Source: Salpingoeca rosetta (Eukaryota; Protista; Choanoflagellata). Taken from it: a stretch of 64,000 nt of DNA. The position numbers and the translations under genes were made by a program. The DNA lies in the NCBI GenBank assembly GCA_033442325.1, contig JAWQFM010000035.1:656421-720420 (forward strand). Reading direction: 5' to 3'. This document shows, one piece after another, positions 9,151 through 16,558 of this stretch. The notes below the pieces were generated by a model. The model ran no database searches and was not told the DNA's origin. It was given only the letters and a program-made list of their open reading frames with translations. Every line of letters begins with the position of its first letter. Position 1 is the first letter of the stretch.

Positions 9151-12100
9151 ATGATGCTCTGGGCCGTGGTGTGTGTATGCCTGAGCCTGGCGGCAACCTC
9201 GCATGGAGTTCACGCACCGCACAGCCGTCTTCGTGCTGGTCAGTCCCCTTTCGTCATTTTCATGGACGTGCAGTGGTGTCAGGACACATCGAGGTTGTCG
9301 CGTGATGGCTCAAATGCAAACTTGCTCTATGCTGTGTCACATGCTGCTATTCCAGATGAAGACGAACACATTGGAGTGCCAGAGGCCTTGCAATTGGTGT
9401 ACCGAGTCCCGGAATCGAAGCAGCTTGCGCTAAACCAGGACGTCGTCGAGCAGCTGAAGCAGGTGCGGGGTTCGGTACTGTGATGTGTGTTGTCGTGAAA
9501 AAAAGGCAGAGCCATCCAAGTGGCAGCATGCGGGTAGTCGCGTTGATGTCACATACTCACGAGGATGTGTCCTGTTGGCTTGTGGTGGTTGCGGACTAGT
9601 GGCCGCCATGTGTCATCCTTGGTGTCAGCGGCAGCATCCGCACGGGCAAGTCCTTCTTTGCGAACCAGCTGCGGGGCGAACAAAAGGGCTTTCACGTCGG
9701 CCACACCGAGCTCTCGGAGACGGAGGTGCGCTTATATGCAGTGCATGTGCGTGTGCGTGTGCGTGTGTGTGTGTGCGTGTGCGTGTGTGTGTGCGTGCGC
9801 GTGTGTGTGTGCGTGTGTGTGTGTGTGGGGGGGGGGGGGTGGTTGCGTGTGTGTGTGCTCCTGTGTGACACATGCATCCAGACTCGTGCATATCTGTTCT
9901 TGTGTATGGCCTTGGGCGAGGTTGTGTGGTGTCATAATTTTGCGCACAGTCACATGTGTCATGCTCACCTCGCGCGTGCCTTGTTTCTGATCCCAGGGTC
10001 TGTGGATCTGGGGCCAGCCACTCAAGGTCGGCGACGTGCACGTCATGCTCATTGACATGGAGGGCTTTGGCGGCCTTGGTAGGGTGTTGTGACCGTGTGC
10101 TGAAGAGGGGGGGGGGGAGGTGTGTGTGTGTTTGTTTGTTGTGTGCATGTGTTTGTTTGTTTGTTTGTTTGTTTGTTTGTTTGTTTGTTTGTTTGTTTGT
10201 TTGTTTGTGTGTGTGTGCGTGCGGGTGTAAGTGAGTGTGTTTGCTTGTTTGTGTGTGTTTGTTTGTTTGTGTGTGTGTGTGTGTGTGTGTGTGTGTCAGT
10301 GTGTGCACCTGAATTGACGACACAAGCGGCCGTCCGCTCACACCTTCACTTATACACACACGCTCACACCTGCAAACGCACACACACACTGTCTTAGATA
10401 CGAACGACACGTACGAGACGCTGCTGTTCTCGCTCGTGTCGACTGTCTCCCATATGATGGTCTATCACGCGAGCGACGTGGATCGCCTCCACATCAGCAG
10501 CCTCGAGGTCTGCGCAGCGCATGCTGACACCCGCACGTGTGCAGTGGGATTGGTGGTGGCGGTGGCGGTGGTGACGTTGCCTTTCTTGTGTCTGTCTGTC
10601 TGTCTGTCTGTCTGTCTGTCTGTCTGTCTGTCTGCCTGTCTGCGTATGTGTATGTGAGCGTGTGTACATGTGTGTGTGTGTGTGCGTGTGCGTGTGCATG
10701 TGCGTGTGCGCGTGTGCGTGTGCGATGCATAACCAGGCATCTTCCTCATCAACCGCTTGCACCTCACGCAGCAACCTTCGCTCTCATATGCATTCATGTG
10801 CACAGCGGTTTTCTCGTCGCTCCTCCTCGTTCTCGCTGCACGCGCTGAGCAAAGACCCGGAGCTGTCGGCGTGGCTTGGTGGGCACGATGATGATGATAG
10901 TGGTGATGTGTTGTTGTGGTGGTGGTAGTGGTGATGTGTTGTGGTGGTGGTGGTGGATGAAACAGGAAGGCCAACTTGCCGCCTTGTCCCTTCGACCTCT
11001 TTGCTGTGTCGCTTGTGCTGTACACATGTTCACACACACACACACTTACACACACACACACGTACACGTACACACACACACACACACATACCGCTGTACA
11101 GAGAGCCCCCCTGGGGAAGACATGCCACGCCTGGCGTGGATTGTGTCTCGCTTCACCCGCGAGCTCACAAAGGCGCCCACAGACTGGCTGCTCGATACCA
11201 TCAGGGCAGAGGTGCGCACACGTGCTGTTATGATGGTGTGATGTGATGTGGTGTGTGTGTGTGTGTGTGTGATGTATGTGATGTGTGTGATGTCATGTGA
11301 TGTGTGTGTGTGTGTGGTTGATATTGAGGACAAGGTACACTTGTGGCGTCGTCGAATGCAGCCAGGCACTGGATGAAATGACCACTGCTCACCACGACGA
11401 CCACCACTACCACGACGACCACCACCATTGTACATGCAGTCGTCTGCGCATCGCGTTGCTCTCGATCGTGTCTTCCCAAACATCGACTGCTTCACACTCC
11501 CGCCGCCAACAGCCGCAGCCGCCGCTTACAGACTCGACGGTGGGTATGCACACGTTTGTGTTTGAGCATGCGTACGTGTGTATGCTCTTGTGTGCATTGT
11601 GTATGTGTGTTGATTGCAATTGCTCATCTTTTCTGCTGATGACAACTATCCGCGCCCACATCACCTGCTCATCATAACTTCATCACACTCCATTATCGCC
11701 ACCATCGCCAACAGAGGTTGACTCGTCCGCGCTGACGGAGGAATTCGTGCGCGCAATGGACATTGTCGGCTTCTTCCTCCAAATCCACCTCAAGGTGCTG
11801 CTGCTGCTGTTGTTGTTGTTGTTGTTGTTGTTGTTGTTGTTGTTGTTGTTGTTGTTGTTGTTGTTGTTGTTGTTGTTGTTGTTGTTGTTGTTGTTGTTGT
11901 TGTTGTTGTTGTTGTTGTTGTTGTTGTTGTTGTTGTTGTTGTTGTTGTTGTTGTTGTTGTTGTTGTTGTTGTTGTTGTTGTTGTTGTTGTTGTTGTTGTT
12001 GTTGTGATTGCAGTTCACGATCGTGGTGGTGATTGCATGCATCTGAGCCCTGCTGTTAGTTCTCACACTTCTCTTCTTTGGATTTGAAGCATCTGCCACC

Positions 12101-15100: not shown

Positions 15101-16558
15101 CGCGTGTGTCGCTGATGACCGAGCTGCGGCAACAGCTGCATAATCTCATGCATGACTCTATCGTTGCAAACGCCCGACACTACGCAGACTCCTCCTGCGG
15201 ACTGGTCAGTGGGCAGTGTGTGTGTGTGTGTGGTTGTGTGCGTGGTTGTGCATGTGCGTGGAAGTGTATCTGTGGTGATGTGAATGATTGTGTGTTTATC
15301 TGTGGTGTGGTGAGTGAGTGTATGCGGTGTGTGTGCGTGCACTCAATTGTGCACAACGAGACGCAATCTTACTTTGCTTTCGCATGTGGTGGCTCTTGTC
15401 GCCTGCCTCGACATTGCTCCTTCGCGTGTTGACACGAACAACCCATCGATCAGGCATTTGAAACGCTGGAGAATATGCGGACATCGCTGCGTGCCGATTT
15501 CCTGCAGGTGCAAAACACACGCACATGCACACATGTACATGCTTGCCACCTGCTGTTTCGTGTGCCCTGCACCTGAGCATTGCATCCATGCTTCTGCTGT
15601 GTTTCCGGTTCAATCGCCACAACACCTGGCAAGCTCTCACATGTACACCCCGTGCGCGTTGCCTGCAGGCATATGAGAAGTGCATGCAGGACAATTTGTA
15701 TGGGCGGCTGGAGGTGCTGGTGGACCGATTCGCCAACCCGTCATCCTCTCCACTCACATACCCGTTTAGATTCTTCTTGCTCAAGTGCGTGTGGTTGTGG
15801 TGGTGAACATGTGTTTGGGAGGATATGCACGTGGTGTGGTCCAACTCTGTGTGTGTGTGTGTGTGTGTGTGTGTGTGTGTGTGTGTGTGTGTGTGTGTGT
15901 GTGTGTGTGTGTGTGTGTGTGTGTGTGTGTGTGTGTGTGTGTGTGTGCGTGCGTGTGTGTATGTCTCTTTCTCACACATGCTCCATCCCTCATTTCTCAC
16001 CACCACCACCACCACTACCACCACCACAATAACCACTCGATGACGATGGGCAAAATGACAGGACGGCGGTGAGTGATGCGGCCATGCAACAGCTGGCGGA
16101 TGTTGTTGAGGATGAGTCGTTCCGTGCTGAACTCGTCAGCGATTGGCTCTATCAGGAGGCAAATCCACTCTCCCCGCTCATCAAACGCAGCTTCCAGGTG
16201 ACGATGATTGCATCACTGCACTTGTGTGTGTGTGTGTGCGTGCGTGCGTGCGTGCGTGCGTGTGTGTGTGTGTGTGTGTGTGTGTGTGTGTGTGTGTGTG
16301 TGTGTGTGTGTGTGTGTGTGTGTGTGTGTGTGTGTGTGTGTGTGTGTGTGTGTGTGTGTGTGTGTGTGTGACGGCGCCTGTTGTTTGGAGCGTTGTCTGT
16401 TCACCCATTTTCGTTGTCCTTCCATCGACTAAACACCCTCCGCTCACATGTACCCCACGTGCTCATCCAAATCAGGATCTGGTCTGGACGATAACGGCAA
16501 TTGGCGGTCTCGTGTTTCTCATTCTCGCCAAGCGCTGTGCATCAACACTCAGCCTGTA
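9151..16558 (+). CDS. Guanylate-binding protein/atlastin-family large GTPase with N-terminal signal peptide and C-terminal TM helix
   Basis: Signal [20 protein letters not shown]1 [20 protein letters not shown] and G2 [13 protein letters not shown] (9600-9725). [14 protein letters not shown]3 (9997-10077). [11 protein letters not shown] (~11120-11155). [13 protein letters not shown] (~11470-11510). Helical stalk exons 12.2-16.2 kb. Last exon [27 protein letters not shown] (16476-16558). Confidence 0.85.

Follow-up and report, generated by a model that had tools for sequence, protein, structure and literature searches.

In animals, proteins of the GBP family have a central part in cell-autonomous immunity; choanoflagellates are the living group most closely related to animals. 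Membrane-anchored forms of the family have been described in Dictyostelium and in plants. In Dictyostelium, DdGBP (Gnbp, Q54TN9), a protein of 796 amino acids, combines a predicted signal peptide at the N-terminus with a G domain, a long helical part, and a transmembrane segment (TM) at the C-terminus (PMC8565484, PMC12040241); it is found in the endoplasmic reticulum (ER) at contact sites with the Legionella vacuole and restricts Legionella growth (PMC12040241). In the case of plants, the AtGBPL2 clade has been described as having a signal peptide and three C-terminal TMs, and as located in the ER and the tonoplast (PMC12489281, PMC12034427). In this study, we have analyzed a window of 64,000 nucleotides (the whole stretch examined) from the choanoflagellate Salpingoeca rosetta (assembly GCA_033442325.1, contig JAWQFM010000035.1, positions 656,421 to 720,420, forward strand), which holds on its + strand what is very probably the single GBP-proper gene of this organism, encoding a 791-residue membrane-anchored large nucleoside triphosphatase (NTPase) with the layout of DdGBP. 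An earlier note on this DNA had set the protein against a background of GBPs as cytosolic proteins without a signal peptide; this background is incomplete, as DdGBP and the plant GBPL2 clade had already been described with predicted signal peptides. The architecture is thus not new, the protein being a member of an already described signal-plus-TM layout, and, since this layout is known from both Dictyostelium and plants, the question of interest is the orientation of the protein in the membrane rather than the existence of a new kind of protein. Two points are of interest: which way the whole signal-plus-TM class of GBPs is oriented, and the fact that S. rosetta and a second choanoflagellate, Barroeca monosierra, have both lost the residue that specifies guanine.

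The gene model was built from the open frames and GT-AG splice sites of S. rosetta, with the B. monosierra orthologue placed on the DNA by tblastn. It comprises 23 exons, joined throughout at GT-AG sites and free of internal stops (Table 1), two of which (exons 8 and 9) were recovered only by way of the orthologue. The span of 9151–16558 given in the earlier note corresponds to what looks like a real gene, its end lying one base short of the stop codon, which finishes at 16559. Pfam, PDB, AF2, and Foldseek analyses took as input single S. rosetta exons or, in place of the S. rosetta protein, the orthologue, and the joined model was used for local translation, blastp against fetched proteins, hydropathy, and shuffles only. 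Among the sequencing runs of the organism, 14 hold between 0.19 and 0.37 of the sampled words, which is near the exon share of the stretch (0.30) and therefore fits spliced RNA, without proving it; the start site and the splicing of exon 1 lie beyond these statistics.

The P-loop exon alone passes the Pfam GBP profile (PF02263), with 27.9 bits against a cut-off of 21.1 bits, and matches GBP5, GBP1, and GBP2 in the PDB, with the arginine finger, the lysine, and the serine in place, which bears out the GBP G domain recognized in the earlier note. The orthologue scores 95.9 bits against the same profile (E 3e-27, profile positions 2–255 of 264) and, by sequence, finds only GBP1, GBP2, and GBP5 in the PDB, with no atlastin match at E<=0.001. 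The P-loop GxxRxGKS with its catalytic arginine, the switch I Ser/Thr, and the switch II DxEG are all present when aligned to GBP5 and GBP2. In the AF2 model of the orthologue, made from a 17-row alignment (A2), the G domain is confident (pLDDT ~70–89) and an N-terminal helix is set apart from it by a disordered linker. Foldseek searches with this model place GBP5, GBP1, and GBP2 at the top (E 1e-18 to 1e-15), with TM-scores of 0.76–0.79 and a root-mean-square deviation (rmsd) of ~3.8 Å for isolated G-domain chains, full-length GBP chains aligning with high rmsd; atlastins and RNF112 form a second tier. Look-alikes in the ESM Atlas are GBP clusters, the best two being arthropod clusters of 750–800 amino acids. 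This GBP-first ranking in Pfam, the PDB, Foldseek, and the ESM Atlas argues that the S. rosetta protein is, by sequence and predicted fold, a GBP rather than an atlastin.

The protein shares with vertebrate GBP1, GBP2, and GBP5 the fold and sequence of the G domain, the P-loop with arginine finger, and the switch residues, and it is predicted to share their all-helical stalk, whereas these vertebrate proteins, of ~590 residues, have neither signal segment nor TM, carry a CaaX lipid anchor, and keep the T(L/V)RD motif. Atlastin and Sey1/RHD3 belong to the same superfamily and are also permanently membrane-anchored; atlastin, however, is the weaker match by sequence and fold, has no signal segment, keeps the RD pair, and is defined by two adjacent TMs arranged as a hairpin and an amphipathic tail, whereas the S. 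rosetta protein has a single C-terminal segment and no RD. Compared by description, the AtGBPL2 clade has in common with it a predicted signal peptide and the permanent C-terminal membrane anchorage, but its members are of ~600 residues, have three TMs, and are a proposed counterpart of atlastin. The closest likeness by description is to DdGBP, which is also the single GBP gene of a bacterivorous protist, of nearly equal length (796 as compared with 791 residues), with a signal-like start, a conserved P-loop and G domain, one C-terminal TM, a helical part longer than that of human GBP1, and no CaaX; the features of the published DdGBP description (signal-like N-terminus, single C-terminal TM, ~800 residues, no CaaX) are all found in S. 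rosetta. Unlike the S. rosetta gene, which is known from sequence, DdGBP comes with experimental data (ER localization, Legionella restriction, and a protease assay). A literature search found no papers on choanoflagellate GBPs.

Relatives were sought by HMMER with the 41-residue P-loop exon against 1.84 billion representative sequences, and the only close one was EP01147_Barroeca_monosierra_P000593 (EukProt; also P0004), the 795-residue orthologue used throughout this study. The S. rosetta model aligns with it collinearly over 757 residues (E 9e-161), identity reaching 56% in the G domain and 44% in the last helix plus TM, as compared with 22% in the stalk and 35% overall. The B. monosierra protein begins with a hydrophobic segment, whose apolar core of 18 residues ends in a clear small-x-small pattern, and finishes with a TM and a tail of 4–10 residues; it shares with S. 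rosetta the hydrophobic ends, the replacement of RD by SR, and four aligned cysteines in the mature chain, and differs from it in the length of the core, the clear small-x-small, the presence of ten sequons, and the tail. As the two N-termini are only 18% identical and both hydrophobic, it is the property that is conserved and not the sequence. The search for homologs with a signal, a GBP domain, and a TM, proposed in the earlier note, has found the same two hydrophobic ends in the orthologue, and an end-to-end match of this kind takes the architecture beyond chance. Word-index searches with the B. monosierra protein (whole, residues 50–320, and residues 84–185) gave nothing new besides P0017, a GBP-fn3 protein of 871 residues with a normal RD motif and no signal, which was rejected as being of unrelated layout. 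P0017 consists of a GBP G domain, fibronectin type III repeats, and a hydrophobic C-terminal region rich in Gly, Ala, and Val; two other database GBPs, P0001 (1792 residues) and P0002 (1050 residues), carry three tandem GBP G-domain stretches per chain. No contigs encoding the B. monosierra protein are on record, and a metagenome scan found no relative.

In the S. rosetta assembly (55.4 Mb, 68 contigs) the GBP gene is present as a single copy. The sole other locus matching Pfam GBP is an atlastin gene on another contig (C3, ~1665300–1669800, + strand; locus L005, ~3300–7800), with an atlastin-type P-loop, an RD motif, a C-terminal two-span TM hairpin, and PDB atlastin matches at E 1e-10; nothing in the genome matches Sey1/RHD3 above the Pfam cut-off. 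Since the genome holds this separate atlastin, a role of the GBP gene as ER fusogen was rejected.

At its N-terminus, the S. rosetta protein shows within residues 1–19 an apolar core of 15 residues, with no charged residue before the core and small residues after it; a short acidic linker follows and homology to the G domain begins at about residue 35. A Kyte–Doolittle scan of the joined model gives exactly two hydrophobic segments, at residues 2–20 and 763–781, so that the signal-peptide-like N-terminus reported in the earlier note is indeed present, its cleavage being predicted by rules of thumb. A mitochondrial presequence was rejected, as the segment is apolar rather than amphipathic and basic. 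A longer N-terminus, starting at the upstream ATG 9010, would have a positively charged N flank and the same predicted orientation. The possible intron pointed out in the earlier note (intron 1) has good GT and AG sites and, as its 117 nucleotides are in frame and stop-free, the signal-like segment is kept whether it is spliced or retained.

This same intron is the starting point of an alternative that we consider improbable, namely that the 5' end is mis-modeled or variable: an mRNA that begins past 9154, keeps intron 1, and is translated from the ATG at 9262, or one with another first exon, would give a signal-less, tail-anchored cytosolic GBP, possibly beside the signal-bearing form. The open frame of the intron, with the ATG that it holds, would allow for such a product, and the N-terminus of the B. 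monosierra protein is itself an ab initio gene prediction; nevertheless, in two independently predicted orthologues the protein opens with a hydrophobic segment that immediately precedes the G domain, and the ATG at 9151 lies in a good context (A at -3), whereas that at 9262 has a T at -3. Furthermore, the spliced model has no in-frame methionine between residues 2 and 124, the latter lying past the P-loop, so that translation beginning after the hydrophobic segment would cost the protein its P-loop and destroy the G domain; a true start beyond the signal sequence, which the earlier note had named as a finding that would undo its reading, thus fails on the spliced model. If retained, intron 1 could also lengthen the linker or, should transcription begin downstream, lead to an isoform without the signal.

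Beyond the G domain, the chain follows the description in the earlier note: a long, predicted helical stalk (~430 residues), a single C-terminal TM with Lys-Arg immediately C-terminal to it, and an end only 9 residues past the membrane, all of which are found in the sequence, with no CaaX. From residue 293 onward, the AF2 model of the orthologue consists entirely of helices, mostly with pLDDT <70, and Pfam GBP_C has no match on this orthologue. With a TM 9 residues from the end, the protein resembles tail-anchored proteins, which are, however, also defined by the absence of an N-terminal signal sequence, whereas a signal-like N-terminus is present here.

When the rules for signal sequences are applied to this arrangement, they give a type I topology, because the N flank is short or positive, the core measures 15–18 residues, small residues precede the putative cut, the flanking charges do not favor a reversed anchor, and, in S. 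rosetta, Lys-Arg lies C-terminal to the TM. The predicted signal peptides of DdGBP and the GBPL2 clade also count for this topology (PMC8565484, PMC12040241, PMC12489281). In the topology so predicted, to which we give a roughly even chance, the G domain would be lumenal or exoplasmic. Oriented as a signal peptide, the N-terminal segment would target the nascent chain to the translocon of the ER and would probably be cut; the G domain and the helical stalk would be translocated, and the C-terminal TM would stop the transfer, leaving the 9-residue tail in the cytosol. The G domain would then be displayed at the cell surface or enclosed in the lumen of secretory or endo-phagosomal compartments. 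This is the topology that the earlier note had proposed; the architecture on which it was based is real and conserved and the signal-sequence rules agree with it, whereas its argument from sequons does not stand in S. rosetta, and its background is incomplete.

The same protein might also be inserted the other way round, a reading that we take as a distinct possibility short of an even chance. The N-terminal segment would stay uncleaved as a reversed anchor, or insert monotopically, and the C-terminal TM would be a tail anchor, so that the G domain and the stalk would be cytosolic, with both ends on the ER or another endomembrane; such a protein would work like the published DdGBP, or tether organelles at contact sites in the manner of an atlastin, and would draw on cytosolic nucleotide. 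In the closed fold of hGBP1 the C-terminal helices fold back toward the G domain and, given this closed GBP fold, anchors at the two ends could pair with each other in the same membrane. Having the TM no more than 9 residues from the C-terminus is a hallmark of tail-anchored proteins, and every studied relative acts on the cytosolic face. A number of points, some of which equally favor the reversed insertion, weigh against a lumenal G domain. To our knowledge, no dynamin-superfamily enzyme acts on the lumenal side of a membrane, and we know of no established GTP supply in the lumen. The strong conservation of the catalytic residues and motifs in the G domain argues for a nucleotide-rich compartment, and the B. 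monosierra TM carries more positive charge in its N-side flank, which fits an N-side-in insertion. The four sequons of S. rosetta are at the level of chance, shuffled sequences giving 3.4 +/- 1.7 (p 0.45), and they are not conserved in position in B. monosierra; the four sequons listed in the earlier note exist, but the argument drawn from them fails in S. rosetta. In B. monosierra, sequons are mildly enriched (10 against 5.6 +/- 2.1), which counts for the type I topology. Four cysteines of the mature chain are aligned between both species, with no evidence of pairing, so that neither of the marks of an ectodomain, glycosylation sites and paired cysteines, is found in S. rosetta. Finally, one report (PMC8565484) links DdGBP, as a putative partner, to a cytosolic Arf-GEF, and the authors of the DdGBP study, who localized the protein to the ER at Legionella-vacuole contact sites, concluded that its G domain is cytosolic (PMC12040241).

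Two of the aligned cysteines lie in the stalk, where Cys601 and Cys660 correspond to Cys607 and Cys666 of B. monosierra; chance would give ~0.07 such aligned pairs in this stalk, which is only 22% identical, and at the second of these sites B. monosierra carries a C-x-x-C.

The conclusion on DdGBP was drawn from a protease assay, the only topology experiment on a protein of this layout, in which membranes carrying GFP-DdGBP or DdGBP-GFP were treated with proteinase K and read out with anti-GFP, both fusions being degraded (PMC12040241). The N-terminal fusion, GFP-DdGBP, "appeared to produce unspecific aggregates" (PMC12040241), and GFP in this position would mask the signal sequence. The functional DdGBP-GFP was digested like calnexin-GFP, a type I control with cytosolic GFP (PMC12040241). 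As a cytosolic C-terminus fits a type I protein, and the full-length band is lost in either orientation, the assay as described would seem unable to separate the two. The accessibility of the C-terminal GFP in fact speaks against the reversed insertion, which, with a lumenal C-terminus, would not predict it (our reading of PMC12040241). The reversed insertion is also disfavored by the apolar core of ~15 residues in S. rosetta, short for a membrane span and for a stable anchor, by the small residues that both species have ahead of a plausible cut site, and by the atlastin that the genome already has for ER fusion. S. rosetta is transfectable and genome-editable, and the orientation question is therefore directly testable in this organism.

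Irrespective of its orientation, the G domain carries an alteration in its G4 motif. At this position S. rosetta has IVSRF and B. monosierra VVSRF (residues 228–232), with SR in place of RD, whereas RD is found in nine out of nine other GBPs in the same MAFFT column; the per-exon alignment to the orthologue (A1), visibly misaligned in the stalk, was used for the G4 column only. The guanine-specifying aspartate is thus an arginine in both choanoflagellate proteins, which depart here from the canonical T(L/V)RD of the GBP family. The replacement of RD by SR with retention of the phosphate-binding and catalytic residues, as read from the two sequences, is a new observation. With the guanine-specifying aspartate lost and the catalytic residues kept, we infer a relaxed base specificity; the protein would be an active NTPase with altered base recognition, and the shared loss predicts a changed use of nucleotides. 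In the type I topology, the enzyme would be a nucleotide-driven, self-assembling, membrane-proximal machine of relaxed base specificity.

In this regard, we tentatively put forward, as a possibility that we hold with some doubt, that a conserved clade of GBP-type NTPases, comprising those of choanoflagellates and Dictyostelium and perhaps plant GBPL2, undergoes translocation and acts at the lumenal or exoplasmic side of membranes, and that guanine specificity was given up in choanoflagellates (RD to SR), possibly so as to use any nucleotide at hand in the compartment, for example against bacteria in food vacuoles. If this were true, it would make the lumenal GBP clade the first machine of the dynamin superfamily on that side of the membrane. 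An anti-bacterial role in S. rosetta would have its parallel, by analogy, in the restriction of Legionella by DdGBP. As the sole GBP-proper gene of S. rosetta is of the anchored, signal-bearing Dictyostelium type, our results suggest that the anchored form of GBPs is old and that the soluble, lipid-anchored GBPs of vertebrates are derived.

Table 1. Features of the S. rosetta GBP gene, in positions of the window
Feature	Position	Strand	Evidence
Whole coding sequence, 23 exons, 791 amino acids plus stop	9151..16559	+	Open frames, GT-AG sites; end-to-end alignment with B. monosierra orthologue
Exon 1; start codon 9151, second ATG 9154; codons 1–19 (9151–9207), signal-like hydrophobic segment	9151..9238	+	Predicted from sequence
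Intron 1, 117 nt, in frame, stop-free, in-frame ATG 9262	9239..9355	+	Putative splicing, read from GTCAGT...CAG
Exon 2; acidic linker and first G-domain strand	9356..9462	+	tblastn to orthologue residues 52–90
Exon 3; P-loop G-S-I-R-T-G-K-S (9630–9653) with arginine finger; switch I Ser/Thr (9714–9722)	9600..9725	+	Pfam GBP 27.9 bits; aligned to GBP5 residues 38–75
Exon 4; switch II D-M-E-G (10054–10065)	9997..10078	+	69% identity to orthologue
Exon 5; G domain	10398..10507	+	tblastn to orthologue
Exon 6; G domain	10806..10878	+	Orthologue alignment
Exon 7; G4 position I-V-S-R-F (11140–11154), RD pair absent	11102..11211	+	HMMER alignment of orthologue to GBP2; MAFFT column
Exon 8; last G-domain strand, conserved Cys-Phe	11440..11539	+	Found through orthologue (tblastn)
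Exon 9	11715..11794	+	Found through orthologue (tblastn)
Exon 10; stalk start	12240..12296	+	Open frame/splice sites, orthologue alignment
Exon 11	12478..12564	+	Open frame/splice sites, orthologue alignment
Exon 12	12792..12959	+	Open frame/splice sites, orthologue alignment
Exon 13	13181..13258	+	Open frame/splice sites, orthologue alignment
Exon 14	13482..13608	+	Open frame/splice sites, orthologue alignment
Exon 15	13800..13879	+	Open frame/splice sites, orthologue alignment
Exon 16	14123..14233	+	Open frame/splice sites, orthologue alignment
Exon 17	14456..14590	+	Open frame/splice sites, tblastn, orthologue alignment
Exon 18; conserved Cys601	14806..14928	+	Open frame/splice sites, orthologue alignment
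Exon 19; conserved Cys660	15061..15204	+	Open frame/splice sites, tblastn to orthologue
Exon 20	15454..15507	+	Open frame/splice sites, orthologue alignment
Exon 21	15669..15784	+	Open frame/splice sites, tblastn to orthologue
Exon 22; conserved helix before membrane	16062..16197	+	54% identity to orthologue residues 723–768
Exon 23; TM 16479–16529 (residues 766–782); tail Lys-Arg plus 7 residues (16530–16556); stop 16557–16559	16476..16559	+	tblastn, hydropathy
Possible 5' leader; in-frame upstream ATG 9010 (weak context); 20-codon upstream open reading frame from 9071	9010..9150	+	Sequence

The introns are rich in (GT)n/(CA)n, such tracts being found in nearly every intron of the GBP gene, and intron 9 contains an (AAC)n tract of ~200 nucleotides (11808–12005). 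Downstream, on the - strand, the window holds an open frame with an annexin repeat (17447–18163; Pfam E 1.6e-12), which is part of a neighboring gene of opposite orientation.

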